In this document: in pieces, positions 4,405 to 62,530 of the stretch
How positions within the stretch are numbered: the stretch's first letter is position 1
Layout of the letters: the number at the start of each line of letters is the position of its first letter
Assembly (NCBI GenBank): GCA_002104905.1
Contig: MCFE01000477.1
Span: forward strand, 1-64,000
From: Basidiobolus meristosporus CBS 931.73
Taxonomy: Eukaryota > Fungi > Basidiobolomycota
Direction: 5' to 3'
Length of the DNA: 64,000 bases
Notes under the pieces: model-generated
Seen by the model: only the letters and a program-made list of their open reading frames with translations
What the model was told of the DNA's origin: nothing
Database searches by the model: none
Translations under genes and position numbers: made by a program

Positions 4405-4414
4405 TGGTAGCAGC
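4405..4414 (+). promoter_or_regulatory. Primer-binding site, initiator tRNA-Met type
   Basis: TGGTAGCAGC immediately after the LTR end; complementary to a tRNAiMet 3' end ...GCUGCUACCA; same motif at 55718. Confidence 0.8.
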
Positions 4415-4461
4415 AATAACCAGAAACCTCCCTCCTGAAGAAAGAAGAAACTACCCTCAAG

Positions 4462-9667: not shown

Positions 9668-9677
9668 TAGGGGAGAA

Positions 9678-25213: not shown

Positions 25214-26138
25214 GATGGTACAGTTGAAAGATGCCAAGAAAGACTTGTGGCCAAAGAATACTCCCCAACATAAGGACTTGACTATATTAAGATCTTTGCA
25301 CCAGCTGCCAAGCTTAGTTTCATCAGATTAATATTGGCTATTGCAGCCAAATACAAGCTTTTCATTGATCCAATAGATGTATAAACTGCATTTTTGAGTG
25401 GAGAACTTGATGAGGGTGTGCATATAAGTCTGCCTGCTGGGTTTGTGCACTAGATAACCCCACTTGGTCTGCAAGCTTAAAAGATCTCTATCTGGTCTTA
25501 AGCAATCACCCAGAGCCTGGAATTCCAAGATGGACTCTCATTTGGAATCATTGAGTTTCCAAAGCAGTAATGCTGACTATAGTATCTACCATCAGCCAGA
25601 TAGAGCAAATCCAGCTCCATTTGCACTATATATGGACAATCTTACTACAGCCACCAATAACCAAAAAACTTTGGAAGAGACTAAATGCAGCTTATCTACA
25701 AAGTACAAGACATCTAATCTAGGACACCTCAGTTACTACTTTGGGATAGAATTCTCCATTGACAAAAGTATGCCAACTATTACTCTAAGCTGATCCAAGC
25801 ATATTCAAGATGTACTAAAGAAGTACCAAATGGAAGACTGTAAACCAGCAGCTACTCCAATGGAGTCAAACCTCAACTAAATCAAGAGAGCTTGGTGCCA
25901 TCTGAAAGCCTTGAGTTTCCTTATCAATCTATGGGTGATGCTCTGATGTACATCAAGCTTGAAAATGTCCAGATATCTCATATTCAGCTGAAGTTGTCAG
26001 CCAATGTGATTGGAACAATGGATCAGATCATATTGCAGCAGTTAAGCGGATTTTTAGATACCTGAAAGGAACTGCTGATATCTGCTTAAGATACACTCAT
26101 AAGGATTCAGAACAGGGTCTTGTGGGATACTCTGACAT

Positions 26139-37438: not shown

Positions 37439-40400
37439 ATGGCTTCCCACATCCGTATGGCCACTCGCCTTTTGGCTTCTCGCTCTACTTTTGCTTTGAA
37501 GTCTCTCTCTACCCCTTTGGTCGTTAGAGCTCTTCCCAAGCCTGCCTTCGCTCCTCGTTTCGCTTCCCGATTGGTCCACACTGCCAAGGCTCCTTCCAAG
37601 GATGTCTTCACTCCTTTGGACTCCTTCCCTCGCCGCCACAACGGCTCCGGTGATCAGGCCATCGGTGAGATGCTCAAGACCGTTGGTGTCAAGTCCATTG
37701 ATGATCTCATTGCCAAGACTGTCCCCTCCTCCATCCGTACCGGCAAGGCTCTGGCCTTGGATAACGGTTTCCCCGAGAGAGAGTTGCTCAAGCGCTTGAA
37801 GGACATTGCATCCAAGAACAAGGTGTACCGCTCCTACATCGGTATGGGCTACACCGACACCGTCGTCCCCAACGTGATCCTCAGAAACATCATGGAGAAC
37901 CCTGGGTGGTACACCCAATACACCCCCTACCAAGCCGAGATTGCCCAAGGTCGTCTCGAGTCCTTGCTCAACTACCAAACCATGGTCACCGACTTGACCG
38001 GCATGGAGATCGCCAACGCCTCCTTGCTCGATGAGGGCACTGCCGCCGGTGAGGCCATGGTCATGTGCTACGCCGCCAGCAGAAACAAGAAGAAGACGTT
38101 CTTCGTCGACGAGAACTGCCACCCTCAGACCAATCGAGGTGATGAAGACCCGTGCCGAAGGTTTCGGCATCAACGTCGTCGTCGGAAACTACAAGACCTT
38201 CGACTTTGAGGCCGCCAAGAACGAAGTCTCCGGTGTGTTGATCCAGTACCCCGCCAACGACGGCATCGTCATTGACTACAAGGAGTTCACCGACAGAATC
38301 CACGGCCTCGGTGGTCAAGTCGTCTGCGCCACCGACCTCCTCGCACTCACCATGCTCAAGCCCCCTGGCGAGTTCGGAGCCGACATCGTCTTGGGTAACA
38401 GCCAACGCTTCGGTGTTCCCCTCGGTTATGGCGGCCCACACGCCGCCTTCTTCGCCTGTACCAAGGACAACGCCAGAAGAATGCCCGGAAGAATCGTCGG
38501 TGTCTCCAAGGATGCCGCCGGCAAGAAGGCCCTTCGCTTGGCCCTCCAAACCCGTGAGCAACACATTCGTCGTGAGAAGGCCACCTCCAACATCTGCACC
38601 GCTCAGGCTTTGTTGGCCAACATGGCCGCCATGTACGCCGTCTACCACGGACCTGAGGGCGTCAAGCAGATTGCCCAAAGAATCCACAACTTCACCAGCA
38701 TCCTCTCCGCTGGAGTCCGTCGCGCTGGCCACACCATCCAGAACGAGACCTTCTTCGACACCCTCACCATCAAGGTGAACGGTGGCTCCGAGGGTGTCAT
38801 CAAGAAGGCCCTCGACAACGGAATCAATCTCCGCCGCATCGATGAGGCCACCGTTGGTATCACCCTGGACGAGACCGTCACCCGCAAGGACTTGGAGGAC
38901 CTCTTGACGGTGTTCTCCGCTGATGGCTCCGTCCCTGACGTTGCCGTTCTCGCCGCCGAGGCCGGGGTCAGCGAGGGCAAGCCAGCCCAGAACTTCCCTA
39001 GCTCTCTTGCCCGTACGTCCAAGTACTTGGAGCACGACATCTTCAACAAGTATCACTCCGAGACCGACATGCTCCGCTACATCCACCACTTGCAGTCCAA
39101 GGACCTCTCGCTCACTCACTCCATGATCCCCCTCGGATCCTGCACCATGAAGCTGAACGCCACCACCGAGATGATCCCAGTCACCTGGCCCGAGTTCGGC
39201 AACATCCATCCATTCGCCCCCGCTGACCAGGTCGAGGGTTACAAGATCATGCTCGACGAGCTCGCCGAGGATCTTGCCGTGGTGACCGGTTTCGACGAGG
39301 TCTCGCTTCAGCCCAACAGCGGTGCCCAGGGTGAGTATGCTGGTCTCCGTACCATCAAGGCCTACCACGAGTCCCGCGGGGAGGGTCAGCGTGATGTTTG
39401 CTTGATCCCCATCTCCGCCCACGGCACCAACCCTGCCTCCGCCGCCATGGCCGGCATGAAGGTCGTCATCGTCAACTGCAAGCCCAACGGCAACTTGGAT
39501 CTCGATGACCTCAAGGCCAAGGCCGAGAAGCACAAGGAGAAGCTGGCCGCTGTGATGGTCACCTACCCGTCCACCTTCGGTGTGTTCGAGGACGGGATCA
39601 AGGATTTGTGTGAGATCATCCACACCAACGGCGGTCAGGTCTACATGGACGGTGCCAACATGAACGCCCAGATTGGCATCTGCTCTCCTGGTGACATCGG
39701 AGCCGATGTTTGCCACTTGAACTTGCACAAGACCTTCTGCATTCCTCACGGTGGCGGTGGACCAGGCATGGGCCCCATCGGTGTCAAGTCTCACTTGGCC
39801 CCCTTCCTCCCTGGCCATCCTTTGGTCAAGACGGGTGGTGACAAGGCCATCGGGCCCATCTCCGCCGCTCCCTTCGGCTCCTCCAGCATCCTTCCCATCT
39901 CCTGGGCGTATGTCAAGCTGATGGGAGCCAAGGGTATCACCGAGGCCACCCACCAAGCCATCCTCAACGCCAACTACATGAGAAGCCGCCTCGAGAACCA
40001 CTACAAGGTCCTCTACACCAACGAGAACGGCATGTGCGCTCACGAGTTCATCCTCGACATCCGTCCATTCGGGGAGACTGCTGGCATCGAGGCCATCGAT
40101 GTCGCCAAGAGACTCCAGGATTACGGATTCCACTCGCCCACCATGTCCTGGCCCGTCGCCAACACCCTCATGATCGAGCCCACCGAGTCCGAGTCCAAGG
40201 CCGAGTTGGACCGCTTCTGCGACGCCATGATCTCCATCCGTGAGGAAATCCGTGCTGTCGAGGAGGGCAAGCAGCCCAAGGTCGACAACGTCCTCAAGAA
40301 CTCCCCTCACCCTCTCGACCGTCTCATGGCCAACGAGTGGACCCATCCTTACTCTCGTGAGCAAGCGGCCTACCCCAAGGCCTGGTTGAAGGAGCGCAAG

Positions 40401-40487
40401 TTCTGGCCCACCGTTTCCAGAATCGACGACGCCTACGGTGACCGTAACCTCATCTGCTCCTGCCCACCAGTCAGCGATTACGAGTAA
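37439..40487 (+). CDS. GCV2: Mitochondrial glycine dehydrogenase (glycine cleavage P protein), copy 1, with a +1 frameshift at ~38130 (pseudogene or sequencing error)
   Basis: ORFs 37373-38209 and 38031-40487 join if one C in 'CAGACCAATC' is removed (copy 2 reads CAGACAATC); PLP-lysine motif 'HLNLHKTF'; ATG at 37439 preceded by a GTAAGT...CAG 5'-UTR intron (~37368-37430). Confidence 0.93.
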
Positions 40488-41975: not shown

Positions 41976-44900
41976 TTACTCGTAGTCACTGACTGGTGGG
42001 CAGGAGCAGATGAGGTTACGGTCACCGTAGGCGTCGTCGATTCTGGAAACGGTGGGCCAGAACTTGCGCTCCTTCAACCAGGCCTTGGGGTAGGCCGCTT
42101 GCTCACGAGAGTAAGGATGGGTCCACTCGTTGGCCATGAGACGGTCGAGAGGGTGAGGGGAGTTCTTGAGGACGTTGTCGACCTTGGGCTGCTTGCCCTC
42201 CTCGACAGCACGGATTTCCTCACGGATGGAGATCATGGCGTCACAGAAGCGGTCCAACTCGGCCTTGGACTCGGACTCGGTGGGCTCGATCATGAGGGTG
42301 TTAGCAACGGGCCAGGACATGGTGGGCGAGTGGAATCCGTAATCCTGGAGTCTTTTGGCGACATCGATGGCCTCGATGCCAGCGGTCTCTCCGAATGGAC
42401 GGATGTCGAGGATGAACTCGTGAGCGCACATGCCGTTCTCGTTGGTGTAGAGGACCTTGTAGTGGTTCTCGAGGCGGCTTCTCATGTAGTTGGCGTTGAG
42501 GATGGCTTGGTGGGTGGCCTCGGTGATACCCTTGGCTCCCATCAGCTTGACATACGCCCAGGAGATGGGAAGGATGCTGGAGGAGCCGAAGGGAGCGGCG
42601 GAGATGGGCCCGATGGCCTTGTCACCACCCGTCTTGACCAAAGGATGGCCAGGGAGGAAGGGGGCCAAGTGAGACTTGACACCGATGGGGCCCATGCCTG
42701 GTCCACCGCCACCGTGAGGAATGCAGAAGGTCTTGTGCAAGTTCAAGTGGCAAACATCGGCTCCGATGTCACCAGGAGAGCAGATGCCAATCTGGGCGTT
42801 CATGTTGGCACCGTCCATGTAGACCTGACCGCCGTTGGTGTGGATGATCTCACACAAATCCTTGATCCCGTCCTCGAACACACCGAAGGTGGACGGGTAG
42901 GTGACCATCACAGCGGCCAGCTTCTCCTTGTGCTTCTCGGCCTTGGCCTTGAGGTCATCAAGATCCAAGTTGCCGTTGGGCTTGCAGTTGACGATGACGA
43001 CCTTCATGCCGGCCATGGCGGCGGAGGCAGGGTTGGTGCCGTGGGCGGAGATGGGGATCAAGCAAACATCACGCTGACCCTCCCCGCGGGACTCGTGGTA
43101 GGCCTTGATGGTACGGAGACCAGCATACTCACCCTGGGCACCGCTGTTGGGCTGAAGCGAGACCTCGTCGAAACCGGTCACCACGGCAAGATCCTCGGCG
43201 AGCTCGTCGAGCATGATCTTGTAACCCTCGACCTGGTCAGCGGGGGCGAATGGATGGATGCTGCCGAACTCGGGCCAGGTGACTGGGATCATCTCGGTGG
43301 TGGCGTTCAGCTTCATGGTGCAGGATCCGAGGGGGATCATGGAGTGAGTGAGCGAGAGGTCCTTGGACTGCAAGTGGTGGATGTAGCGGAGCATGTCGGT
43401 CTCGGAGTGATACTTGTTGAAGATGTCGTGCTCCAAGTACTTGGACGTACGGGCAAGAGAGCTAGGGAAGTTCTGGGCTGGCTTGCCCTCGCTGACCCCG
43501 GCCTCGGCGGCGAGAACGGCAACGTCAGGGACGGGGCCATCAGCGGAGAACACCGTCAAGAGGTCCTCCAAATCCTTGCGGGTGACGGTCTCGTCCAGGG
43601 TGATACCGACGGTGGCCTCATCGATGCGGCGGAGATTGATTCCGTTGTCGAGGGCCTTCTTGATGACACCCTCGGAGCCACCGTTCACCTTGATGGTGAG
43701 GGTGTCGAAGAAGGTCTCGTTCTGGATGGTGTGGCCAGCGCGACGGACTCCAGCGGAGAGGATGCTGGTGAAGTTGTGGATTCTTTGGGCAATCTGCTTG
43801 ACGCCCTCAGGTCCGTGGTAGACGGCGTACATGGCGGCCATGTTGGCCAACAAAGCCTGAGCGGTACAGATGTTGGAGGTGGCCTTCTCACGACGAATGT
43901 GTTGCTCACGGGTTTGGAGGGCCAAGCGGAGGGCCTTCTTGCCGGCGGCATCCTTGGAGACACCGACGATTCTTCCGGGCATTCTTCTGGCGTTGTCCTT
44001 GGTACAGGCGAAGAAGGCGGCGTGTGGGCCGCCATAACCGAGGGGAACACCGAAGCGTTGGCTGTTACCCAAGACGATGTCGGCTCCGAACTCGCCAGGG
44101 GGCTTGAGCATGGTGAGTGCGAGGAGGTCGGTGGCGCAGACGACTTGACCACCGAGGCCGTGGATTCTGTCGGTGAACTCCTTGTAGTCAATGACGATGC
44201 CGTCGTTGGCGGGGTACTGGATCAACACACCGGAGACTTCGTTCTTGGCGGCCTCAAAGTCGAAGGTCTTGTAGTTTCCGACGACAACGTTGATGCCGAA
44301 ACCTTCGGCACGGGTCTTCATCACCTCGATTGTCTGAGGGTGGCAGTTCTCGTCGACGAAGAACGTCTTCTTCTTGTTTCTGCTGGCGGCGTAGCACATG
44401 ACCATGGCCTCACCGGCGGCAGTGCCCTCATCGAGCAAGGAGGCGTTGGCGATCTCCATGCCGGTCAAGTCGGTGACCATGGTTTGGTAGTTGAGCAAGG
44501 ACTCGAGACGACCTTGGGCAATCTCGGCTTGGTAGGGGGTGTATTGGGTGTACCACCCAGGGTTCTCCATGATGTTTCTGAGGATCACGTTGGGGACGAC
44601 GGTGTCGGTGTAGCCCATACCGATGTAGGAGCGGTACACCTTGTTCTTGGATGCAATGTCCTTCAAGCGCTTGAGCAACTCTCTCTCGGGGAAACCGTTA
44701 TCCAAGGCCAGAGCCTTGCCGGTACGGATGGAGGAGGGGACAGTCTTGGCAATGAGATCATCAATGGACTTGACACCAACGGTCTTGAGCATCTCACCGA
44801 TGGCCTGATCACCGGAGCCGTTGTGGCGGCGAGGGAAGGAGTCCAAAGGAGTGAAGACGTCCTTGGAAGGAGCCTTAGCGGAGTGGACGAATCTGTAGAC

Positions 44901-45023
44901 GAAACGAGGGGCGATAGTGGGTTTCGGCAGAGCTCTAACGACCAAAGGGGTAGAGAGAGACTTCAAAGCAAAAGTAGAGCGAGAAGCCAAAAGACGAGTA
45001 GCAGCGCGCATTTGGAAAACCAT
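41976..45023 (-). CDS. GCV2: Mitochondrial glycine dehydrogenase (glycine cleavage P protein), copy 2, intact 1015 aa
   Basis: Uninterrupted ORF with a basic presequence, '[14 protein letters not shown]', '[10 protein letters not shown]', '[18 protein letters not shown]'; strong C/G-ending codon bias. Confidence 0.98.
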
Positions 45024-46252: not shown

Positions 46253-46841
46253 AGACGTAGCTTCTTGTTTAACAAATGATTTAATTCCATAGTAGCAGCA
46301 CGGAGAATAAACAAAATTTAAAGTAATCTGCTCCGCTCGACCCGTTGTATCGGCTCGCATGGTTTATATACTTATTTGGATATATACCTCGGAAATTGGC
46401 CAGATTCGGCTCGCAAATGCTAGGTCAGATTAAATTCTCGAATCCAGATTTCAATTATACCATGAATGCCAAATCGATTGCGCAACGCTATTTCTTTGGC
46501 ATGATTTTCAGATGTCAATGGACGAATCAAGCCCAATCCAAGCATGCACATATCAGATAAATCGATTTCATGTAGCTGGATTGATCTCTGAAGCTTTCGC
46601 CATCCCACGTAAACGACAGTATCCATCTTCGTTCTTGGATAGGTAATTCGCGCGCTGTTCTATACCGAGTACTGCTCTAACCTACACAATGATGATTGGC
46701 CAGCGTGGCCTTGTCTAGAATTGCAATGCCGTGGTCCCGATCAGCTACTTCGCGAATGCCAAGAAACCCATTCTTTGCACAGCAATTCGTATATATACTT
46801 CGCCTAGCAACCGCAGAATAGCCATCAGAACATCAAGCAAA

Positions 46842-47849
46842 ATGCATTTCGCCACTAGAATTTTAGCTACCGCCGCTGCTGCCATGGCAGTTGTATCCGC
46901 TTCTGACTTCTTCCCCTTCGAGTATCCTAGTGATTGCATCACTTCGTGCTCGTTGCAGGCTGGCAAGAAATGCTGGTCTTCCTACACTCAAGATGAGTCT
47001 GATCCCAATTTCATCCAATCCTTCTCTTGCCTTTGCGACTCCAGTAATCCTGGCAATGGAAACTTCATGATGGACAGTCTAAAATGTCTTACCGCAAACA
47101 AGTGTGAAGAGAAGGATATCATGGCCTCTATGGCACTCCAAGGTCCTATCTGTGAATGGTACAACCAACACAAGAATGACCCTAAGCCTACCACCACCGA
47201 GAAGCCTGAACCCACTACTACCGAGAAGCCTGAACCTACCACTACCGAGAAGCCTGAACCTACCACTACCGAGAAGCCTGAACCTACCACTACCGAGAAG
47301 CCCGAGCCCACTACTACCGAGAAGCCTGAACCTACCACTACCGAGAAGCCCGAGCCCACTACTACTGAAAAGCCCGAGCCAACCACTACTGAGGAGCCTG
47401 AAACTTCTACTACCGAGAAGCCTGAACCCACCACTACCGAGAAGCCTGAATCTACTAATACCGATAAGCCTGAGTCCACTACCGCCGATAAGCCCGAATC
47501 TACTACTACCGAGAAGCCTGAGCCCACTACTACTGAAAAGCCCGAACCTACCACCACTGAGAAGCCTGTTGAAACCACCACTTCTGTTGAATCTGCTGAA
47601 ACCCCAAAACCCACTACCACTACTCTTCCCTCCTGTGAGCCAGTGACCGTCACCACCACTGTGTACGTCACTGATGATGCCCCCAAGCCCACAGACACTA
47701 CCTGCGAGCACGGTGCCTACCAATGTGTTGACTCTGGTAAATCTGGAGATTTCACCGTTTGTGTTCACGGTAGCAAGGTCGCCAACTCTTGTGCCCCCGG
47801 TACCGTCTGCAAAAACTATGCAGGCTCCATTGTCTGTGACTGGGCTTAA
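46842..47849 (+). CDS. Secreted cell-wall-type protein: 8-Cys CFEM-like N-domain, 16 x TTTEKPEP-type repeats, CBM19-like C-domain
   Basis: Likely ATG at 46842 (MHFATRIL), by homology with 48600; 24-bp repeat array 47187-47570; ends 'CAPGTVC..VCDWA'. Confidence 0.88.
   Translation: MHFATRILATAAAAMAVVSASDFFPFEYPSDCITSCSLQAGKKCWSSYTQDESDPNFIQSFSCLCDSSNPGNGNFMMDSLKCLTANKCEEKDIMASMALQGPICEWYNQHKNDPKPTTTEKPEPTTTEKPEPTTTEKPEPTTTEKPEPTTTEKPEPTTTEKPEPTTTEKPEPTTTEKPEPTTTEEPETSTTEKPEPTTTEKPESTNTDKPESTTADKPESTTTEKPEPTTTEKPEPTTTEKPVETTTSVESAETPKPTTTTLPSCEPVTVTTTVYVTDDAPKPTDTTCEHGAYQCVDSGKSGDFTVCVHGSKVANSCAPGTVCKNYAGSIVCDWA
47187..47570 (+). repeat. Coding minisatellite, 16 x 24 bp
   Basis: Consensus CCTACCACTACCGAGAAGCCTGAA. 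Confidence 0.95.
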
Positions 47850-48599
47850 GCCTCGCATATAAAACCATTCAAATAAACGTGATCCAACTGAGTTCTCCAA
47901 TGCCAAATCGCCTCTAAGCAAGGCAATCAATTCTCACGCGCTGAAATCCAACCTAATTGCCTCAATGGCGGGATATAGCTGGATGCCTTTGCACGATCTC
48001 GAAGTGGCATCGAGGTATGCTGATCCAGATGTAAAGATCCGATTTGTGAATGCCAAAGATAGCCGTCAAATAAAATTTCCCGCTATTGTTAGCATATTCA
48101 GATTTGGGCTTCGTCTAGGTACATGGCGCATCAAGAAAGTCAGTAAGGTATCCTATCGGGTGGCTGGGTCATTTTACTTACACCGGCTTATGCTAGCGAT
48201 TATCTGACTTGGGTACTTGACTTCACCACCAGGAGTACTGGATATGATTGCTTAACTAAAATTAAATCAGTCAGTTGCGGCATAATAGACCGTTTCGGTT
48301 CCGTGGCATGGTCTCGTACTAGACGCTCAAAACGGTTGGCTCCTTCCAGAGTCTGGTTTTCTGTGGGCGTCTGTCCGAACAAATAAGTCCAGCTTCCATT
48401 TAGGTCGTACGTTGCAGTTTTTCTCCGTTCCAGAATCGGTACTGAGAGTGTCCAGCATTTTGTATGGGGACCGAATTGAGGATATGCTTCCAGAGCGTCA
48501 CTGTAAGTTGCACTTGCGACGAACCATTCTTGGCAGTGGTGTGTTGTATATAAACCCCATGCTTCCATGGGCAAGGTCAGCATCTAACAGTTTAGAAAA

Positions 48600-49916
48600 A
48601 TGTATTTCGCTACCAAGATTTTGGCCACAGCCGCTGCTGCCATGGCAGTTGTATCCGCTTCGGACTTCTTCCCCTTCGAGTATCCTAGTGAATGCATCAC
48701 TTCATGCTCGCTGCAAGCTGGCAAAAAGTGTTGGCCTTCCTACACCCAGGATGAGTCTGATCCCAACTTCATCCAATCCTTCTCTTGCCTTTGCGACTCC
48801 AGTAATCCTGGTCATGGAAACTTCATGATGGACAGTCTAAAATGTCTTACCGCAAACAAGTGTGAGCAGAAGGACATTATGGCCTCTATGGCACTCCAAG
48901 GCCCTATTTGTAAATGGTATAACCAACATAAGAATGATCCAAAGCCTACAGAGAAGCCTGAACCCACAACTACTGAGAAGCCCGAACCCACAACCACTGA
49001 GAAGCCCGAACCCACAACCACTGAGAAGCCCGAGCCTACAACCACTGAGAAGCCCGAGCCTACAACCACTGAGAAGCCCGAGCCTACTACCACCGAGAAG
49101 CCTGAACCCACAACCACTGAGAAGCCCGAGCCTACTACCACTGAGAAGCCCGAGCCTACGACCACCGAGAAGCCTGAACCCACAACCACCGAGAAGCCTG
49201 AACCCACAACCACTGAGAAGCCCGAGCCTACTACCACTGAGAAGCCCGAGCCTACTACCACTGAGAAGCCTGAATCCACTACCACTGAGAAGCCCGAGCC
49301 TACTACCACTGAGAAGCCCGAGCCTACTACCACTGAGAAGCCTGAATCCACTACCACTGAGAAGCCCGAGCCTACTACCACTGAGAAGCCTGAATCCACT
49401 ACCACTGAGAAGCCCGAACCTACTAGCACCGAAGAGCCTGATTGTACAACAGAGAAACCCGAGCCTACTACCACTGAGAAGCCTGAGTCCACTACCACTT
49501 CTGAAAAGCCCGAGTCCACCACCACTGAGAAGCCGAAGCCTACTACTACAAACAAGCCCAAGCCTACCGGCACCGAAGAGCCTGATTGTACAACAGAGAA
49601 ACCCGAGCCTACTACCACTGAGAAGCCTAAGCCCACTACCACTGAAGAGCCTGAGTGCACCACGGAGAAGCCTAACCCTACTTCAACCGTACTCCCCACC
49701 TGCGAGCCAGTTACCGTGACGACCACCGTCTACATCACCACCACCAATCCTGAGCCTACGAGCGCTTCATGTGAGCATGGCACCTACGAGTGCGTAGATT
49801 CCGGCAAGTCCAGAGATTTCACAGTCTGCCTCTATGGCAAGAAGGTCAGAAACTCCTGCTCCACCGGGACCGTGTGTAAGAGCTATGCAGGCTCCATCGT
49901 CTGCGACTGGGAATGA
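48600..49916 (+). CDS. Tandem paralog of 46842-47849 with a longer repeat tract (438 aa)
   Basis: Near-identical signal peptide and 8-Cys domain; 20 in-phase 24-bp units followed by variant units; CBM19-like C-terminus 'CSTGTVC..VCDWE'. Confidence 0.9.
   Translation: MYFATKILATAAAAMAVVSASDFFPFEYPSECITSCSLQAGKKCWPSYTQDESDPNFIQSFSCLCDSSNPGHGNFMMDSLKCLTANKCEQKDIMASMALQGPICKWYNQHKNDPKPTEKPEPTTTEKPEPTTTEKPEPTTTEKPEPTTTEKPEPTTTEKPEPTTTEKPEPTTTEKPEPTTTEKPEPTTTEKPEPTTTEKPEPTTTEKPEPTTTEKPEPTTTEKPESTTTEKPEPTTTEKPEPTTTEKPESTTTEKPEPTTTEKPESTTTEKPEPTSTEEPDCTTEKPEPTTTEKPESTTTSEKPESTTTEKPKPTTTNKPKPTGTEEPDCTTEKPEPTTTEKPKPTTTEEPECTTEKPNPTSTVLPTCEPVTVTTTVYITTTNPEPTSASCEHGTYECVDSGKSRDFTVCLYGKKVRNSCSTGTVCKSYAGSIVCDWE
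48963..49680 (+). repeat. Coding minisatellite: 20 x 24 bp plus ~10 variant units, some with Cys (EEPDCTTEK)
   Basis: Consensus CCTACTACCACTGAGAAGCCCGAG. Confidence 0.93.
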
Positions 49917-52357: not shown

Positions 52358-53455
52358 TTTATTCCATTATTGTGCCTATACCAATCAGTATTACTCGGAA
52401 GCGAACTTCCCCCCCCCCGAACCCCACAACATCATCTATTGACCCTCTTGTGCCTAGAATAATTCAGCATAACTATACACTCCCTTCTGACTTGTATCAA
52501 CAAAATTTTTAGTACACACATCTAATCACCTCAATATAAATTTATTCTATTCTAATCACCTCAATATAAATTTATTCTATTCCACCCATTTCCTGTTTCG
52601 CTTTCACTTCCACTTCCAACTAGAGCAGGCTGTGTGACAAGCGTTGAGGGATTCTGATTCGTTGAGAGGGGGGTCATTTCCGTCGGAACGAATTCGCCCC
52701 ATCCCATAATCTCATGGTAGGTGAGATTTTTGGTATATACTCGATCTCGTGTCCAAGGAAAAATCAGAATCAATGCTTGATAGCAGTTTCATTGGAACCA
52801 CGGAAATTCCAGGAATTCTTTCCCGGACTGACTTCCTACGGTACCTCAACTGTGTTAGCTAGATCGATGATGCCGCATCCACACCGATATTACAGGTTGT
52901 TGTTTCCCCACTGTAAGTTGGTACTATTTGCGGATCACATTTCCTTTTTATTTGAAATCTGAAAAAGTAATTCTAATTACCCAACTACTGCTTATTAAGT
53001 GTGTTTGTCGTTGGGTACTGCACTGATGACGATAATGCATCAAGCCAGTGTCAATAATCTAGATTAACAATTGTTCAATGAGAAGCAATGTCTAGCAGGA
53101 TAAGGCATCCACTCTTTAATGTTACATGATACAGCAGGCTGCATCTAGCGAAAAGATTCATGCTAGTCTGTCCAACTAGTACTAGAGATAGTTTAGTTTC
53201 GTCTTTCACCAACTTACCAAATCAACTAGTTACCCGCCAATAAGATTCCGGACTGGACTGTCCGAACCAATAGTGCTTACTGAATATACCAAATTCCAAT
53301 CGAACCGGAACCATGAGGCCTGGACCAAAGGTAATTCTGCGATGGAATCGATCCACCAAATCCTTGGTAAAGTTGGCATCGAAGCCACAGATGTATGAAA
53401 TATAAATCCCTCGGAACTCCCTCCTCCATGTCTAACCATACAACACTCTACTGCA

Positions 53456-53929
53456 ATGAAGCTTCTATCTCTAATCGTGACTGCCTTCACTTTCGCCGGG
53501 GTAGCCTTCGCCTTTGACCCGAACACTCTCCTCGCACTCGTGAATCAGCAACGAGCTCTGGTCGGCGCCCCGGCTCTCACCATCGACCCAAGACTCACCT
53601 TGGCTGCCGAAAGACACACTCTGTATCAGGTCACCGTGCATGAGATGACCCATGACGAGCCGAACACGACACTGGGTCAGAGAATCAGTGCCACAGGCTA
53701 CCCATGGAGCAACATTGGGGAGAATGTTGCAGCGGGGTATGGGGATGCGGTATCGGTGATGAACGCCTGGATGAACTCGCCAGAGCATCGCCGCAACATA
53801 TTGGACCCCATATTCACCCAGACTGGCATCGCCTACGACCCCCAAGGCAGCTACTGGACTCAGGACTTCGGCCGGCCTATGATGATGCGCAAAAGGTCAC
53901 CGAAATTTGTTGGAAGAAGAAAGCAATGA
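53456..53929 (+). CDS. Secreted CAP/SCP-domain protein (YkwD-like subtype), copy 1
   Basis: Signal peptide; 'LALVNQQRA', 'GENVAAGY', 'WMNSPEHRRNIL', 'YWTQDFG'; TATAAA at 53401. Confidence 0.92.
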   Translation: MKLLSLIVTAFTFAGVAFAFDPNTLLALVNQQRALVGAPALTIDPRLTLAAERHTLYQVTVHEMTHDEPNTTLGQRISATGYPWSNIGENVAAGYGDAVSVMNAWMNSPEHRRNILDPIFTQTGIAYDPQGSYWTQDFGRPMMMRKRSPKFVGRRKQ

Positions 53930-55247
53930 AGAGTGGGATCGATAGCAATATATACCCATTATATACCCACCATATACCCATACACTAACAGCATAGAGGA
54001 TAGAGATAAATAAAGAAGACCTGGCCATTAAGTCTACTCTGCTACGAAGGGCAAGCAGTAGTGGTGCTTGTTGACTCCATACCATGTGTGTCATGATTTG
54101 TGAATATTGCATTGCTCTAGCATTCTGTATCGTAGATTAGGTTCCCTGAGAGGTTCCTCGAGATAAAGCTAGCATCTCCACTTACCAAATTGGACCAAAT
54201 CATAAATGGCTGCCATCAACCCTCGCCAATGACCGTTGAATTCCAATAATCGGTACCAGTACTAGGTTTCTGGACCTTGGTATAGTTTTCAGAGAAGCTA
54301 CAGATGAAATATCAATGCCATAGAATTCCCTCCTCCACGTCTAATCATGCAATACTTCAATACAACACTAGACCAGAGACCCAGCGTAACATTGGAGAGA
54401 ATGCTGGTATCTATTATCATTCCCTCATTCAATATCCAATTGCTTCTAAATTACCAAGTATTCATTTATTGCTGGCTTATTATTTCAAATCAAACCACAG
54501 GAGTGCTTGATATCCTGAATGGTATAACGACCTACCTACCAAAGGAGAACCACTTGTTAACTCCAAACCACACTGATGAAAGCAATGAAGAGCGGGATCG
54601 AAAACAATATATACCCACTATATACCCTTCATATACCCAGCATATATCCATATATGTGCAATACAGAGCGAGGTTGCAAAGAATAGAAGCGAGCATACAA
54701 GAAAGCAACTAGAAATGTTTACCCAAAATATATCCACTCACTCACCGTATAGAGTTATGCACTACCAACCAGAAATCAATAAACGACCATACAACCCTAG
54801 TTCCATCAGAAAACAGCCGAAATTTCAACAGGCCAAGCAAAGAGTGGGGATTTGACCAACTAAGGGAGCAATTCTCTCCGGGATTCACAGTGAGGAAGGT
54901 ATTCCACTTCCGGACTGCAACGGGTCTTTGCAAAAAACTACTTCGTTAAGTAAACTCGGCCTGCGTAACACTAAAACTGAGTCCATGATACGATGTTACG
55001 TTCCTAAAGTCAACTTTCAGGATTTGCTACTCGATAATTCTCAAAGTCCGTCTAAAAAGTTGACCTTCTTCAACTCTTGGGCTACGAACCTCCCCAGCAG
55101 TGAATCGTAGCTGTCCAAATGAATAAACCCCTTTGGGGCTTCTTTCTCTTTTTTTATTGATAGTAAAATATGCAACAATATTTCATCAGTGATTCCACTA
55201 GCTTGAGTCTGTCTTACTATTGTATATCTTTAAGTGTGTTTCCACGT

Positions 55248-57076
55248 TGTTACGAAATAAAAATATACTACCGTAGAAACAGCCCACGTAAAGAAGAATC
55301 CATGCACGTACAATTATGAAACTTGGCAGCAATGCAGCATCACCAATTCCAAAGACATGTACCAGGTTTCAAAAGCACACTGTCACTACTTGTGACACAA
55401 CCAAACTATTAACAAACACTTTATTTACTCCAAAACTACTTTGACCCGTAACATAAAATTTACACCATATATAGCCAAGTGACTAAACCTTAATGCTACA
55501 AAGTTTCAAAGACAGAGCTTAACTAGTGGCCAAGATACAAGCGATCGGAAATCATGCTACGATCCCACGCAAGCCCACAAGATAGTGTTTCAAACTAATA
55601 ACTATAAAAAGTGAACACTTACCTTTAATAAAGGCAGTCGATTTTCACAGTCCGAAATCGGTCGAATCAACCAATCAGAGTTTATCACTCCGATCTGCGT
55701 TTTTAGGACATAACATTTGGTAGCAGCGATACATTATCACTGGTAGAAGTCATTAAGAAAACATGCCCACAGATGAATCTACTACTTGGCAACACACCTT
55801 GGAAGGTATCCTTCAGGCACAGCTAACACTGTGTACCGAAATGAAGAACCAAATGAACAGGCAAGATGCCAGAATCCCTATACATCTAAATAGTTATAGT
55901 GGTAAAACTGGAGAGAATATAACTGCCTGGATTGTACAAGTGGAACAGGTGTTCCAAGCAAAGAATGTCACGGATGACAACAAGAAAATAGCCATCATAG
56001 GAAGTTACTTACAAGGCAGAGCTCAATCATGGTACCAAGGGAAGTTACTACAAGCAAATGCAAGCAACACTTGTGCTTTCCCCAGTTGGGACTCCTTTAA
56101 AACCGAAATCAGAAGCTTCTTCCTCCCCCCAAACTTTCAAGGAACGCTAAGAATTGAGCTAGAAAATCTCAAACAGAAAAATAGTGTATTGGAGTATGTA
56201 CAAAACTTCAAGAACATCCTTGCACAAGTTCTAGAAATGGCAGAAGGAGATAAGATACACTACTTCTTAAAAGGTCTCAAGGGAAGAACAAAAGCAGAAG
56301 TAAGCTACAAGTTCCCCACAACCATAGAAGCAGCAATACACTATGCCATTACCTATGACTCTATACGGGCGACCAATCCACACTTTTACCAGACATCCTC
56401 CCAGAAGAATCAGCACAACCGGCCAGACCACTCGCAGAATACCTCCGAAGGCCCCACTCCCATGGAATTAGACCACATACAGCAGACAGAAGACCCTAGC
56501 AGCTCAAAAACACGGTACAGGTGTCACTACTGTAGAAAACCTGGTCACTTCATCAAAGATTGTAGAAAAAGACAAAGAAATCAGAAAGAAAAATATGAAG
56601 GAACTGCCCGTAAGGACCCACCAGAGCACTCCCAAGCAAATCTAATGGATCAGCCAGGCGCACTGGGAAGCTATGACCATGACTACATCCAAGCTAATGA
56701 AACCTTATATTTGGCCAAGTCAATGACAGCACAAACACAAAACCAATCCACTCCGCTAGTATATCTACCAGTAAAGATAAAAGGAAGATTATACACAGCC
56801 CTTGTGGACTCGGGTGCTACTCACACTTACATTGCCCAAAGAATAGTTAAGGAACTGCAACTCAGGACCACAAGAATCCCTCCTAAAGCAACCACCATAG
56901 CCAACCGAAGCACCATATCCATAGAAGAACAATGTTCAGAACTCCTGGTGGAACTAGGCAACCTTCAAGAAACCTTACAACCATTAGTCTTCCCTCAAGC
57001 CAACTTTGACCTAATATTGGGCAAACCCTGGCATTGGAAACATAATCCCCAGATAGACTGGCGCACAAATGAAGTG
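55248..57076 (+). mobile_element. Second Ty3/gypsy family: 5' LTR (55248-55715), PBS, gag-protease; 3'-truncated
   Basis: TGTTACG...CATAACA LTR with TATAAAA and AATAAA; PBS TGGTAGCAGCG at 55718; no RT, integrase or 3' LTR follows. Confidence 0.88.
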
Positions 57077-57211
57077 CAGACTATTGTAAGACCTACGAAG
57101 AGCCTGCTTAGCGCAGTGGTAGCGCGTCAGTCTCGTAAACTGAAGGTCGCCAGTTCAATCCTGGCAGTAGGCAATTTTTCTTTCCAAATTGAATGTCGAC
57201 CCTTGATATAG
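55763..57211 (+). CDS. Gypsy Gag-protease ORF; its last ~45 codons are read-through of an LTR end and a tRNA gene
   Basis: Gag homologous to 4462 ORF ('YSGKTGENITAWIVQVEQVF', 'PMELD'), CCHC 'CHYCRKPGHFIKDC', protease 'ALVDSGA', 'LILGKPW...NPQIDW'; homology stops at ~57076. Confidence 0.85.
   Translation: MPTDESTTWQHTLEGILQAQLTLCTEMKNQMNRQDARIPIHLNSYSGKTGENITAWIVQVEQVFQAKNVTDDNKKIAIIGSYLQGRAQSWYQGKLLQANASNTCAFPSWDSFKTEIRSFFLPPNFQGTLRIELENLKQKNSVLEYVQNFKNILAQVLEMAEGDKIHYFLKGLKGRTKAEVSYKFPTTIEAAIHYAITYDSIRATNPHFYQTSSQKNQHNRPDHSQNTSEGPTPMELDHIQQTEDPSSSKTRYRCHYCRKPGHFIKDCRKRQRNQKEKYEGTARKDPPEHSQANLMDQPGALGSYDHDYIQANETLYLAKSMTAQTQNQSTPLVYLPVKIKGRLYTALVDSGATHTYIAQRIVKELQLRTTRIPPKATTIANRSTISIEEQCSELLVELGNLQETLQPLVFPQANFDLILGKPWHWKHNPQIDWRTNEVQTIVRPTKSLLSAVVARQSRKLKVASSILAVGNFSFQIECRPLI
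57102..57173 (+). tRNA. tRNA-Thr(CGT), copy 1
   Basis: Cloverleaf: GCCTGCT/AGTAGGC acceptor stem, GCGC D-stem, TCAGT-CTCGTAA-ACTGA anticodon arm, GCCAG-TTCAATC-CTGGC T-arm; T-run terminator follows. Confidence 0.93.
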
Positions 57212-58567
57212 TTGGCTATGCCTGAATTTTCGTATCCGAAAGCTCACTCCAAAAGTGAAGAACGCGGGAAAGGTGTGTTAGTAGAGTCCCCATTTTTATC
57301 TTCAACTGCATCGAAGTTGCATTTACTAAATCACCAGGCACGCTATGATGTACAGAAGTCAGACACTGGTACAAGCTTGCTTTGTGGGACGAAAACCAAT
57401 TCCAACCAGACGATCCATTTTTTTTGATGAAAAATTTTCACCCTGGAAAGTATAAATACGGCACTTGTGGGTGGGTGATTCCTCACGACTGTACTTTACA
57501 GGATTATGTATATAGTACATTCCCAGTCTATGTTTCCCAACAAAGACACTAATACCAAGCTGGTAGATGAGATGTAGTGCGCTGTCCGTAAAGGGAAGTG
57601 TGAGTAGCGACCGATCGGTCCTTCGGGACCATAGGACCTACTCAGTTGATGAACTTGCCGGTTGATTATTCCAACAGCCTGGCGAGGACGGTTTGCACAT
57701 TCTGACAGCTTGTTATTACTCATTTCCCATTCAATACCTCGACATTCAAATATACCAAAAGAATATGCCTTGTCTATAGCGCATATGGATGCAATGCAAT
57801 ATCAATGGAACCTTTATTGATGCGGTGAACACAGGACTAGATGTTGCTACAAAGTCCTCAGTTGATATATAACGAGCTGAATTGGCAATTTTGATTGCAC
57901 ATCAGGAATAGTTGGTGCTATACCTTAATACAAGGAAAACGCAGAAAGGCAAGGTCCGGAAGTTTTAAGCGGCCAATGCAGCCTCATAGTTTTAAAGAGA
58001 CGTTATATATGTTAATAGCTTCGCAGGTTATCACATAGACACAATGTGGTAGTTTAAGTGTTGTGGCTGCTACCTGGAAGTACATCCAAGCTGATATTTT
58101 CGTTAGTGTTGTTCTACCGTTTGTATGGGATGATTTTGATATACTTCCTTCTGGTCAATGATCTATATCACAACTCGCTTATTCGTCTTGTAGAAACAAG
58201 GTGATATATATTTGTGAGGGCTGGTTACCCAGCTCCCCCTATTTGAGGTTTCCTCAGTCTAATACTCTACCTCAGTTAGGTTTTAACTTCGTAGCAATAT
58301 GTTATATTCTGGTCCGTCAAATATTTAAAAGGGACCTGTTTATTGCAAGTTGCTTCGTTCATTTATACTTTTGACATGTTTGATAGTCATATTATTTTAT
58401 CCTAAAGCAGTGCGGCTTTGTTATTCTCATCGAGTCGTGGTAGTGCTAAATTTGTGTGGTACTGGACCCTTATCTAGATGGTTATATGGCGTTGTCTCAG
58501 ATTATCCTTCATGTGATCTGTGCATGTTTCGCTTCTAAGCTTTGATGCATGTTTATCTTTGAACAAC

Positions 58568-58795
58568 TGTTATGATATTCAGGTCCGGTTCTCTCACTTT
58601 TGTGGTGTAACAAGGTCTGTCTTTATTTTTAGCGCTGGATCTGCTTTGAACACAATTCCCGATTGCTTGCATAGACTATTGTCTCAAGTTTGCCCAACAG
58701 TGAGCATATATTGAAACATCATCACACGGTGACATGACTATATATGTCGTGATCATCTGTATGTTCTGGTCGGCTTTCAGGCTATTGTAGTAACA
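58568..58795 (-). mobile_element. Solo LTR type B, upstream of tRNA-Leu
   Basis: TGTTATGATA...TAACA; colinear with 59641-59865; flanks ACAAC/ACAAT (imperfect TSD); AATAAA on the minus strand. Confidence 0.85.
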
Positions 58796-58800
58796 ACAAT

Positions 58801-59026
58801 TGTTATGAAATCCAGGCCAGTTCCCGTCCTTCTGTTTGGTGTAACAAGGTCTGTCCTTTATTTTAGCGTAGGATCTACTTTTTATACATTTCTCGATCAT
58901 TTGCATACAACTTGTCTTACTTTAGCCCATCTGTCTTTGATCATCTTTGATGATTTTTGGTGTTGACGCATCTCTATATGCGACAACTTGCTGCCTGTTC
59001 TGGTCGGGATTCAGACTTTCATAACA
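58801..59026 (-). mobile_element. Solo LTR type A (226 bp), 9 bp upstream of tRNA-Leu
   Basis: 10-bp terminal inverted repeats TGTTATGAAA/TTTCATAACA; exact TSD CAAT; reverse complement of 60200-60425. Confidence 0.93.
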
Positions 59027-59035
59027 CAATAAATT

Positions 59036-59117
59036 GGTGAGATGGCCGAGTGGTCTAAGGCGCTGCGTTCAGGTCGCAGTCTCTCCGGAGGCGTGGGTTC
59101 GAACCCCACTCTCATCA
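59036..59117 (+). tRNA. tRNA-Leu(CAG)
   Basis: GGTGAGA/TCTCATC acceptor stem, CTGCG-TTCAGGT-CGCAG anticodon arm, long variable arm, GGTTCGAACC B-box; TTTT downstream. Confidence 0.96.
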
Positions 59118-59640
59118 TAATCTTTTGGTTGAACGATGATGTATTTTGGGTTGTGTAGCTATTGTATTTGCCCTGCTCTAATGATAAGGACCGGTGTATC
59201 TTCCAATTGATGCATAGGATGAAAGCATGTAATGTATATAGTCCTGATATACACAAATATTAAATTTTGATCACCCACTTGAATACAAAGCGCAATGATA
59301 CCGTTTTGCACTTAAGACAGTTCATCTATATCTACATGAAATATAGTAGCTCTTATTGTTTGTATTTTATGATTGCTAGCCTGAATATTGCCGAATGCCT
59401 ATGTCGTGGTTAGGTCATCAGCATCTTCAAACCATCACAGCCGGAGACCTACCCCAGAACCATCCGTCGAGTATTACTAAAATTGGGCAAAATGGCTAAG
59501 ACATGCATATAGCAAATGTAGTTCACCAAAGTATAAATTAGCAAAACACGTTAGAAAATAAAGTAGTTTTTCCTTCCGGCCTCGACCTTTGAACACCAAT
59601 CTCTGGCTAGCACCCTTGGCAGTACATACTACGACACCTA

Positions 59641-59865
59641 TGTTATGATACTCAGGTCCGGTTCTCCTAGTTTTCTGGTGTAACAAGGTCTGTCTTTATT
59701 TTTAGCGCTGGATCTGCTTTGAACATAATTCCCGATTGCTTGCATAGACTGTTGTCTTAAGTTTGCCCAACAGCAAGCATATATTGAAACATCATCACAC
59801 GGTGACATTACTATATATGTCGTGATCATCTGTATGTTCCGGTCAGCTTTCAGACTATTGTAACA
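59641..59865 (-). mobile_element. Solo LTR type B, oldest of the stack before tRNA-Thr copy 2
   Basis: TG...CA termini; exact TSD CCTA (59637-59640, 59866-59869). Confidence 0.92.
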
Positions 59866-59870
59866 CCTAC

Positions 59871-60197
59871 TGTTACGTACTTAAAGAGTAATGTTCTTTA
59901 GAGAGTACAAAACTAGATAACGTGTAGGTTATCTTGTAGATTCGACAGGGTAGTGTAAGAATATCTCTTAAAAGGTTAGAGTGGTGACTTTGTAGAAATA
60001 TATTCAAGCTAATATTCGTTTCTACTACGCTTTTCTGCTTATAACCCAAAAACTTCCCTTTATTTGATTGCTTGTTTGGTATTTATACCTTATTGTGAGT
60101 CTGGTGATTTGTCTTTGATTTGCTTTTCCCTGGCTACTAAGTCGTCTTTGTATGCGTTGATATCACTTAACATCAACTGACTCCTTACTCTGTAACA
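59871..60197 (-). mobile_element. Solo LTR type C (327 bp)
   Basis: TGTTAC...GTAACA termini; TATAAATA and AATAAA on the minus strand; TSD CTAC (59867-59870), recovered on the right after removing the type A insertion. Confidence 0.88.
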
Positions 60198-60199
60198 CT

Positions 60200-60425
60200 T
60201 GTTATGAAAGTCTGAATCCCGACCAGAACAAGCAGCAAGTTGTCGCATATAGAGATGCGTCAACACCAAAAATCATCAAAGATGATCAAAGACTGATGGG
60301 CTAAAGGAAGACAAGTTGTATGCAAATGATCGAGAAATGTATAAAAAGTAGATCCTACGCTAAAATAAAGGAGAGACCTTGTTACACCAAACAGAAGGAC
60401 AGCAACTGGCCTGGATTTCATAACA
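60200..60425 (+). mobile_element. Solo LTR type A, 11 bp upstream of tRNA-Thr copy 2
   Basis: Same TIRs and length as 58801-59026, opposite orientation; exact TSD CACT (60196-60199, 60426-60429). Confidence 0.93.
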
Positions 60426-60436
60426 CACTACCAAGA

Positions 60437-60508
60437 GCCTGCTTAGCGCAGTGGTAGCGCGTCAGTCTCGTAAACTGAAGGTCGCCAGTTCAATCCTGGC
60501 AGTAGGCA
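60437..60508 (+). tRNA. tRNA-Thr(CGT), copy 2
   Basis: Identical to 57102-57173; followed by a T8 terminator. Confidence 0.94.
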
Positions 60509-60977
60509 ATTTTTTTTACCAAATTGAATGTCGACCCTAGATATCGATGGTAATACCAAATCACGCACACTTATTTAGCAAATGACAGTAACATCCGTAA
60601 CCAATAGATGCTAACTACAGAGTAAACTGCCTGCGCTGATAAATTAACCAGTTGTCCGAGTGAAGTGGGATTAGTCGCAATCCAAATATGGGAAAGATCT
60701 AACCAGGAATTTCATTTTGGTCTTCCAATTCACTGAAGTTCCCTTGGACTGGAGGGTGCTAGCCAATACACTTACAAGGTATGCTGATTCGACTGTTCCA
60801 ATGATAAGGAGAACTTCCCCGCCTTCAAGGACCAGAAGGCCTGGACCGGGGGTAAATTCTGCGATGGAATCGATCCACCAAATCCTTGGTAAAGTTGGCA
60901 TCGAAGCCACAGATGTATGAAATATAAATCCCTCGGAACTCCCTCCTCCATGTCTAACCATACAACACTCTACCGCA

Positions 60978-61451
60978 ATGAAGCTTCTATCTCTAATCGT
61001 GACTGCCTTCACTTTCGCCGGGGTAGCCTTCGCCTTTGACCCGAACACTCTCCTCGCACTCGTGAATCAGCAACGAGCTCTGGTCGGCGCCCCGGCTCTC
61101 ACCATCGACCCAAGACTCACCTTGGCTGCCGAAAGACACACTCTGTATCAGGTCACCGTGCATGAGATGACCCATGACGAGCCGAACACGACACTGGGTC
61201 AGAGAATCGGTGCCACAGGCTACCCCTGGAGCAACATTGGGGAGAATGTTGCAGCGGGGTATGGGGATGCGGTATCGGTGATGAACGCCTGGATGAACTC
61301 CCCAGAGCATCGCCGCAACATATTGGACCCCATCTTCACCCAGACTGGCATCGCCTACGACCCCCAAGGCAGCTACTGGACTCAGGACTTCGGCCGGCCT
61401 ATGATGATGCGCAAAAGGTCACCGAAATTTGTTGGAAGCAGAAAGCAATGA
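60978..61451 (+). CDS. Secreted CAP/SCP-domain protein, copy 2
   Basis: Two visible amino-acid differences from 53456-53929 (S/G, R/S); ~140 bp of upstream sequence is also shared. Confidence 0.92.
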   Translation: MKLLSLIVTAFTFAGVAFAFDPNTLLALVNQQRALVGAPALTIDPRLTLAAERHTLYQVTVHEMTHDEPNTTLGQRIGATGYPWSNIGENVAAGYGDAVSVMNAWMNSPEHRRNILDPIFTQTGIAYDPQGSYWTQDFGRPMMMRKRSPKFVGSRKQ

Positions 61452-62530
61452 AGTGAGACATCGGTCCAATCCAATAGAAATGCATACCCACTATATACCC
61501 CATACCGATCGAGTAGCGCAATACCGTAGTAAATAGAAATCTAAATCATTTAATAAACGAGTGAGATCAGCAAGCACGGGCAATTTCTCTTGAATACCAC
61601 ACCCCAGTGCTGGCATCATTAAAAGGACCTTCTATGTTCACAATGTCCATGTTGGAAGCGCAGAGGCCACTTTAGAGAGGATAAGACAAACAAGACCCTT
61701 TTCAGTTTACACCAAAAGCATATTAAGAAACAGTGGTAGATAAGTAGCTCCACAGAGGGCAGATGGCCAGTTTAGTATGCAAAACTGGCTTACCATTGAT
61801 CAGAAGTACACCAAGTCCATCAATCCCGTATGATTGCCTATAAATGTTCATTGGTGGCATCAGCATTAATGGCAATTCCTTACACCTATCCACTACTTGA
61901 TTCAGTAACAATACAATGTCTAAATAGACAAATTCCCAGGTAAAGAAATACTTATAGGAACGTCCTAGTCATAAGAAAACGAAGATCACTGTGATAAGAA
62001 TGGTGCAGTGGTGTGCTAAAATTTTCAAGACAGCAGTTACAAATCGAAGAACTAAAATCACTGCAATGGTGGCAACATAACTGAAAACAATATCAAACAT
62101 ATACAATATTGCATTGTCAGTTGGCACTTTTGCACCAAGGCCTAGCAACCTTCCACTCATTACCAATAGGTCAGACCCATACTTGTGAGTGAAATGTTAA
62201 CTCAGCCTCCATTCAAAACGAAAGCAATTTAACGTTAATATAAGTGAAATGATCCAGCTAATGTGCATTGCATCTGACAGACTATTCAGCATAGCTTTTG
62301 GTACCAGTATATTATTGTAATACATATCATGCTTTACCGTTAGTAAGGAGTACATTGTTGTGTTGCTCATTTCTATTCTTTGCGGTGCTACCAGGATACC
62401 TTGATGCACTATGCAGGATATGCGCTTCGCAACGAATACTTGGCTGTGGGAATTGAAAGAGTACACAGCATAAATACTACATGAAGCTTTATTAGGGTAG
62501 TATCATTTACAAGGACGAAACAATTACGCA

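Follow-up and report, generated by a model that had tools for sequence, protein, structure and literature searches.

Does a stack of solo long terminal repeats (LTRs) in front of a tRNA gene record repeated integration guided by that gene, or can it arise in some other way? The question is raised by a locus of Basidiobolus meristosporus CBS 931.73, where five solo LTRs of 225-327 bp, named A1, B1, A2, C, and B2, lie directly upstream of a tRNA-Leu gene and of the second of two tRNA-Thr genes (Thr2; the first copy is Thr1). The locus is part of what we call the window, i.e. the whole stretch of DNA analyzed, which comprises positions 1-64,000 of contig MCFE01000477.1 (assembly GCA_002104905.1). 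The targeting of tRNA genes by LTR elements is a classic example of integration that does no harm and is guided by protein. tRNA genes were called by ARAGORN and Rfam, and LTRs were delimited by repeat finding, within-window BLAST, and direct reading. The readable genome totaled 85 kb, made up of the 64-kb window and 21 kb of a contig of the same genome, MCFE01000043.1. From the evidence set out below, we consider it likely that the solo LTRs represent at least five independent integrations by three LTR-retrotransposon families aiming at the RNA polymerase III (Pol III) start region of tRNA genes.

Solo LTRs upstream of tRNA-Leu and tRNA-Thr

All five LTRs start with TGTTA and end with TAACA, and thus have TG...CA termini with short inverted repeats (Table 1). 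In B1 the terminal inverted repeat is perfect over 10 bp (TGTTATGAAA), while the inverted termini of A and C span just 5-7 bp. The A and B repeats share ~74% identity over 130 nt, with common blocks along their whole length; LTR C resembles both in its termini only. Judged by these similarities, there are three LTR families, A being related to B, and C distinct. We found no further A, B, or C copy in the 64-kb window or in the 21 kb of MCFE01000043.1. The three tRNA genes of the locus (Thr1, Leu, and Thr2) all look intact and lie on the + strand, and a run of T directly follows tRNA-Thr2.

Table 1. Coordinates of the solo LTRs, tRNA genes, and Ty3/gypsy elements in the window, with target-site duplications (TSDs) and distances to the first base (+1) of the mature tRNA. 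PBS, primer binding site; ORF, open reading frame; PR, protease; RT, reverse transcriptase; IN, integrase.
Feature	Position	Strand	TSD (positions)	Distance to tRNA +1	Remarks
Solo LTR A1, 228 bp, distal at tRNA-Leu	58568-58795	- (tentative)		10 nt (B1 removed)	94% identity to A2; termini TGTTATGATA...GTAGTAACA
Solo LTR B1, 226 bp, proximal at tRNA-Leu	58801-59026	- (tentative)	CAAT (58797-58800 and 59027-59030)	9 nt (caataaatt)	97% identity to inverted B2
Solo LTR A2, 225 bp, most distal at tRNA-Thr2	59641-59865	- (tentative)	CCTA (59637-59640 and 59866-59869)	10 nt (cctaccaaga; C and B2 removed)	94% identity to A1
Solo LTR C, 327 bp, middle at tRNA-Thr2	59871-60197	.	CTAC (59867-59870; right copy split by B2, 60198-60199 and 60430-60431)	9 nt (B2 removed)	window-unique; termini TGTTACGTAC...CTCTGTAACA
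Solo LTR B2, 226 bp, nearest tRNA-Thr2	60200-60425	+	CACT (60196-60199, first two letters = last two of LTR C; and 60426-60429)	11 nt (cactaccaaga), +1 at 60437	opposite orientation to B1
A-type LTR end remnant, 12 nt	57080-57091	.		10 nt (tRNA-Thr1, 57102)	actattgtaaGa
tRNA-Thr(CGU) copy 1 (Thr1)	57102-57173	+			ARAGORN, Rfam
tRNA-Leu(CAG), target gene	59036-59117/59118	+			ARAGORN (start 59035), Rfam (start 59036; 55.6 bits)
tRNA-Thr(CGU) copy 2 (Thr2), target gene	60437-60508	+			ARAGORN, Rfam (69.9 bits)
Truncated Ty3/gypsy element D	55249-57079	+			5' LTR 55249-55715, TT, PBS TGGTAGCAGCGA, gag-protease ORF from 55763
Ty3/gypsy element E	4038-10046				gag-PR-RT and RT-RNase H-IN ORFs; 370-bp LTRs, 97% identity; PBS TGGTAGCAGCAAT

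To compare the insertions, we used peeled distances, measured from the LTR end to the mature tRNA +1 after removing each later insertion together with one copy of its TSD. The staggered cuts, which are 4 bp wide in four of the five cases, have their midpoints 7.5-9.5 bp upstream of base +1 of the mature tRNA. The sequences that received the insertions, acaataaatt at Leu and cctaccaaga at Thr, are unrelated, which implies that the insertion position was set by the gene and not by sequence. Family B was found in both orientations (B1 versus B2) at the same offset. Since TSDs and orientations differ and two tRNA species are involved, the five LTRs must be separate insertion events.

The order of arrival can be read from the stacks: A was followed by B at Leu, and A by C and then B at Thr2, with the newest LTR nearest the gene. 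For instance, the left copy of the B2 TSD takes in the last two bases of C, and B2 thus arrived after C. This order fits the divergence of the copies, as those of A (94% identity) are always distal and those of B (97%) always proximal. Each newcomer inserted between the earlier LTR and the gene, which implies that an occupied tRNA gene stayed a target. A random insertion has a chance of ~9/64000 of falling into a 3-bp slot before any of the three tRNAs in 64 kb, and five independent insertions a chance of ~5e-20. The pattern is real and far beyond chance, and targeting of tRNA genes at this locus is well supported.

Much of this had been proposed by a first-pass annotation made from the sequence of the window. 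It described stacked solo LTRs of three types, with which our coordinates, termini, and identities agree, and its proposal that position is measured from the tRNA was borne out by the unrelated targets, the differing TSDs, and the confinement of the ends to a 3-bp slot. Its range of 9-11 bp also stood, although four of the five individual distances were off by one: it gave 9 bp for A and 10 bp for B at Leu, and 11 bp for A, 9 bp for C, and 10 bp for B at Thr. The statement that the TSDs all differ holds for the four clean 4-bp duplications (B1, A2, C, and B2), A1 being without a clean one.

A sixth LTR end was found at tRNA-Thr1 in the form of the 12-nt A-type remnant. The sequence there reads actattgtaaGa-cctacgaaga-GCC, compared with actattgtaaca-cctaccaaga-GCC at the peeled Thr2. 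In total, LTR ends at 9-11 nt (n = 5) and the remnant at 10 nt (n = 1) precede three tRNA genes. The Thr1 and Thr2 loci are themselves duplicates (57093-57222 versus 60428-60557), with 93-95% identity reaching ~50 nt past the gene. As these duplicates share an A-type end at -10, one of the six LTR ends was probably inherited by duplication. On its upstream side the remnant is joined to the truncated gag-protease ORF of element D. When compared with another Ty3 protease, this ORF remains homologous up to ...NEVQ (gaa gtg cag), exactly at the junction, and so a deletion with CAG microhomology fused D to the LTR stump.

A CAP/SCP-domain gene (157 aa) is likewise present in duplicate, at 53310-53968 and 60831-61500 (95.5% DNA identity), and its two copies flank the whole tRNA/LTR region. 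Together, the CAP-gene pair and the tRNA-Thr pair point to a local segmental duplication that was remodelled afterwards by insertions. The LTRs could then be imagined either as untargeted insertions that survived at harmless spots beside tRNA genes or as parts of LTR-tRNA units spread by segmental duplication. The A-type end shared at -10 by Thr1 and Thr2, as well as the duplicated CAP-domain gene in the same region, would fit such an account. However, it has to accommodate five LTRs with different TSDs and orientations before two tRNA species, and selection for harmless sites cannot yield a spread of ±1 bp. Moreover, the other LTR families of the window sit in repeat-rich DNA away from tRNA genes. 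We regard this explanation as highly unlikely.

Relationship of the LTRs to Ty3/gypsy elements

To place the solo LTRs, we compared them with elements D and E. The D ORF contains the Pfam domains Ty3_capsid, zf-CCHC, and RVP_2, and the limits of its LTR were taken from a second D copy on MCFE01000043.1, which is degenerate and colinear with gag-PR-RT-RNase H-IN polyproteins. Both the D and the E LTRs have TGTTA...TAACA termini, as found on A, B, and C, and both PBSs match the 3' end of the initiator tRNA-Met on MCFE01000043.1. Ty3 of Saccharomyces cerevisiae likewise primes from initiator tRNA-Met. The TSDs of E are 4 bp long, namely ATAT/ATAT for a solo LTR on MCFE01000043.1 and GGAC/GCAC in the window. 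No Pol III gene lies near element E, whose RT is interrupted by the insertion of a ~1-kb repeat (6457-7440) that is related to 26138-27094.

The minus strand of A/B and the D LTR have four features in common, arranged colinearly: a TATA motif, an identical 15-mer (CAAGCRATCGGRAAT), AATAAAG[GA]CAG, and the 3' end CATAACA. For the 15-mer, 0.26 matches are expected even when 2 mismatches are allowed. On the minus strand of A1, TATA is followed by AATAAAGACAG, and this, along with the 15-mer of D, is the basis of the tentative strand. These features suggest a distant relationship of A and B to D. Probably, A1, A2, and B1 face away from the tRNA, and B2 shares the orientation of the tRNA. By the features shared with D and E, the A, B, and C families are probably of Ty3/gypsy type.

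A different class would be short non-autonomous DNA transposons with terminal inverted repeats, such as Ginger-like derivatives, that favour tRNA upstream regions. Ginger-like elements bear an integrase, begin with TGT, and make 4-bp TSDs. The perfect 10-bp terminal inverted repeat of B would suit such a transposon, as would the fact that no internal region of the A, B, or C repeats was found in the 85 kb. On the other hand, A and C have inverted termini of only 5-7 bp, proven Ty3/gypsy LTRs of this genome carry these termini and make TSDs of this length, and the succession of TATA and then AATAAA on one strand fits the promoter/poly(A) layout of an LTR. We therefore give scarcely any credence to a DNA transposon and retain Ty3/gypsy-type LTRs as the probable identity of A, B, and C.

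Further members were sought in protein and nucleotide collections. An exhaustive protein search with the D gag-PR returned one Basidiobolus model only, the MCFE01000043.1 locus, and protein searches with the E RNase H-integrase, a full-length relative, and the D gag returned no Basidiobolus polyproteins. Transposons seem to have been left out of the public Basidiobolus annotation. A pattern scan of metagenome contigs with a conserved A/B 19-mer gave no match. Two relatives at 33-47% protein identity, one from another NCBI assembly and one from a sequencing run, were set aside, as they showed no sign of Basidiobolus and their contigs were without a complete LTR, and ten further loci, from sequencing runs, turned out to be an irrelevant chromodomain-bearing Ty3/gypsy element.

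Element D was also considered as a tRNA-targeted element in its own right. This was rejected since its intact ends, in the window and on MCFE01000043.1, are not at tRNA 5' ends and its contact with Thr1 came about by deletion only. The 254 bp to the left of the D 5' LTR (54995-55248) start with TGTTACGTTCCTAAAG, nearly the first 16 nt of LTR C, and no further likeness to LTR C was found within 54995-55248. This segment may be the stump of another LTR that was entered by D. Homology between the flank left of 54995 and the flank left of A2 was ruled out by alignment.

Proposed tethering to the Pol III machinery and known tRNA-targeting elements

The fixed distance to the gene is best explained by an integrase tethered to the Pol III initiation complex. 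TFIIIC, which reads the internal A and B boxes, sets TFIIIB at a fixed distance upstream and would so provide the ruler. An integrase docked on the TFIIIB/TFIIIC pre-initiation complex would then cut at a constant distance from the gene whatever the sequence, and the full-length elements would later be reduced to solo LTRs via LTR-LTR recombination. A tRNA gene has its promoter inside and would therefore remain active after an insertion and open to new hits, which would give rise to LTR stacks. Owing to the inverted termini, either orientation would put ...TAACA beside the TSD, with the terminal CA ~10 nt before the mature end; that this CA dinucleotide serves as a start site is speculation. 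Beyond the insertion geometry, we infer all steps of this mechanism. Such a ruler has been shown for Ty3, whose integrase contacts TBP and Brf1 through its C-terminal domain and a vestigial chromodomain (PMC8632968). Tj1 of Schizosaccharomyces japonicus presumably shares this integrase-TFIIIB mechanism.

The tRNA genes might also be targeted with a tether other than TFIIIB, such as a Pol III subunit, TFIIIC, or the DNA structure at the start site. The Ty1 integrase reportedly uses AC40, another Pol III component, as its tether, and thus offers a precedent for tethering by a Pol III subunit. In addition, the 4-bp TSD seen here, compared with 5 bp for Ty3 and Tj1 (PMC8632968, PMC4600332), suggests a somewhat different intasome geometry. 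However, Pol III tethering in Ty1 gives a broad, periodic window of ~1 kb and not a 3-bp slot (PMC5911963), and single-base precision by the start site is, in Ty3, the product of the TFIIIB ruler. We consider a non-TFIIIB tether unlikely.

Several observations weigh against Pol III-directed insertion by Ty3/gypsy-type families. First, targeting has been verified at one locus with three tRNAs, and we infer placement at the Pol III start site from how far the LTR ends lie from the mature tRNA end. Second, A1 is flanked by CAAC on the left and ACAA on the right, the best TSD reading being a 5-bp ACAAC/ACAAT with one mismatch. Third, an nhmmer profile of A/B gave no significant match on the D LTR, and the A/B-D local alignments score ~3.5 standard deviations above shuffles, with single shuffles equalling them; element class and LTR orientation are therefore held as probable only. 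The gypsy-type label of the first-pass annotation keeps the indirect support of the termini common to D and E and of the 4-bp TSDs of E, and the likeness of the A/B and D LTRs was unconfirmed by nhmmer; the separate radiation that it also proposed is conjectural. Fourth, the 85 kb contained no full-length element with an A, B, or C LTR. Lastly, none of the 25 tRNAs of the MCFE01000043.1 array has an LTR at -10, and families D and E are not tRNA-adjacent in the window or on MCFE01000043.1. These last findings imply that targeting belongs to some families and that occupancy is partial. Of the 28 tRNAs in the 85 kb, 3 are occupied, and neither A nor B nor C was found away from tRNAs.

The known system that comes closest in geometry is the Ty3/gypsy element Tj1, whose insertions lie 5-11 bp, and mostly 10-11 bp, upstream of the mature end of the tRNA (PMC4600332), compared with 9-11 bp in Basidiobolus. 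The ~10-bp offset, which the first-pass annotation listed among the traits of its proposed group, is thus not new. Tj1 also has a short LTR (244 bp, compared with 225-327 bp in Basidiobolus), and it is found in tRNA-rich regions that carry several related LTR families (PMC4600332). The two differ in TSD length (5 bp in Tj1 and 4 bp in four of the five Basidiobolus LTRs), a detail rather than a matter of targeting mode. The orientation of Tj1 is fixed in the direction of the tRNA, whereas family B occurs in both orientations. Furthermore, Tj1 comes from an ascomycete yeast whose genome is small, whereas Basidiobolus is an early-diverging fungus, and targeting was demonstrated experimentally for Tj1 but is deduced from fossil insertions here.

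Ty3 resembles the Basidiobolus families in its base-pair-precise insertion beside the Pol III start site in either orientation and in the sigma solo LTRs that lie before tRNA genes (PMC8632968, PMC5911963). It differs in having a 5-bp TSD, with strand transfer at -6 and -2 from the start site (PMC8632968), as opposed to 4 bp. Later insertions between an earlier LTR and the gene are a signature of Ty3 and Tj1. The Ty3 partner, TBP/Brf1, is established, whereas A, B, and C are known from LTRs alone. Sigma ends lie ~16-19 bp from the mature tRNA end, several bp farther than the Basidiobolus LTRs.

More distant likenesses are found in DGLT-A of Dictyostelium discoideum, which is of Ty3/gypsy type, sits upstream of tRNA genes in either orientation, and consists mostly of fragments (PMC5006619, PMC5911963). 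Its window of 13-33 bp is looser than the 9-11 bp of Basidiobolus, and its host is an amoebozoan, in which targeting is deemed convergent with that of yeast (PMC5006619, PMC5911963). The LTRs of the Ty3/gypsy families Tyl3, Ylt1, and Tyl6 (Yarrowia lipolytica) and beta/Tca8 (Candida albicans) precede tRNA start sites by a few bp (PMC5911963). For these families, which we compared by description only, targeting was read from genome positions, as in Basidiobolus. All of them belong to Saccharomycotina, and the window of the beta LTR is broader, at 6-30 bp (PMC5911963).

In a 2018 review, the table of tRNA-targeting elements comprises Ascomycota and Dictyostelium only (PMC5911963), and our full-text literature search found no description of such elements for Basidiobolus, Zoopagomycota, or early-diverging fungi. 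Both agree with the first-pass remark that such a group was not known to be described, and the guess of an early-diverging fungus was correct, the host being B. meristosporus. In line with this origin, the public annotation of GCA_002104905.1 places a CAP-domain gene of the window at an identical coordinate on MCFE01000477.1. The listed hosts, ascomycete yeasts and dictyostelids, all have compact genomes (PMC5911963), and the Basidiobolus genome exceeds those of most basal fungi in size, according to a review (PMC10386755). Pol III-directed LTR elements are known in yeasts and slime moulds; the interest here lies mainly in the early-diverging host with a large genome, where several families have a ruler in common.

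We tentatively raise a broader possibility, to which we lend limited weight: precise Pol III start-site targeting by Ty3/gypsy elements may be ancestral in fungi, predating the Zoopagomycota/Dikarya split, or may have arisen independently in Basidiobolus, with several diverged LTR families using a single ruler and a 4-bp stagger in a genome that is large, rich in repeats, and outside the argument of a safe haven in a compact genome. If a set of families does target tRNA genes in Basidiobolus, the host range of the strategy would extend to early-diverging fungi, and genome compactness could be tested as a driver of tRNA targeting. An integrase tree could tell an ancient from a convergent Ty3/Tj1 ruler. 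Several diverged integrases acting on the same few bp would be useful for understanding how the ruler is constructed and for guided-integration tools. In this genome, the insertions account for the LTR pile-ups around tRNA genes.

Neighboring features on the two contigs

A full-length U3 snoRNA gene (57485-57710, +; Rfam 66.7 bits) separates tRNA-Thr1 from the LTRs stacked at tRNA-Leu. It has a TATA-like motif ~30 nt upstream and no abutting LTR.

The tRNA array of MCFE01000043.1 holds 24 tRNA genes in 7.5 kb (2075-9565) at a spacing of 100-300 bp, with a tandem-duplicated block Thr-Leu-Tyr-Asn-Phe, and it includes the initiator-type tRNA-Met. At 9726-9953 of this contig, the 5' two-thirds of a tRNA-Arg(UCU) are fused in the T arm to the last 170 bp of a D-type 5' LTR, which could stem from deletion, rearrangement, or an assembly join. 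A repeat of ~740 bp, present in the window at 23775-24513 and 27093-27831, is a near-perfect palindrome with two arms of ~370 bp (~90% identity); a copy on MCFE01000043.1 (1552-2072) stops 3 bp before tRNA-Glu.

Elsewhere in the window, 37439-40487 and 41976-45023 form an inverted duplication with 98.6% identity over 3 kb and arms 1.5 kb apart. It carries two genes for glycine dehydrogenase (P-protein), of which the first-named is full-length (1015 aa) and the other 5'-truncated (818 aa), both intronless single ORFs. Lastly, 46731-49916 contains two adjacent ORFs (372 and 438 aa) of proline-rich tandem repeats with weak Cornifin/SPRR matches, one of which ends in a weak match to the CBM_19 carbohydrate-binding domain.

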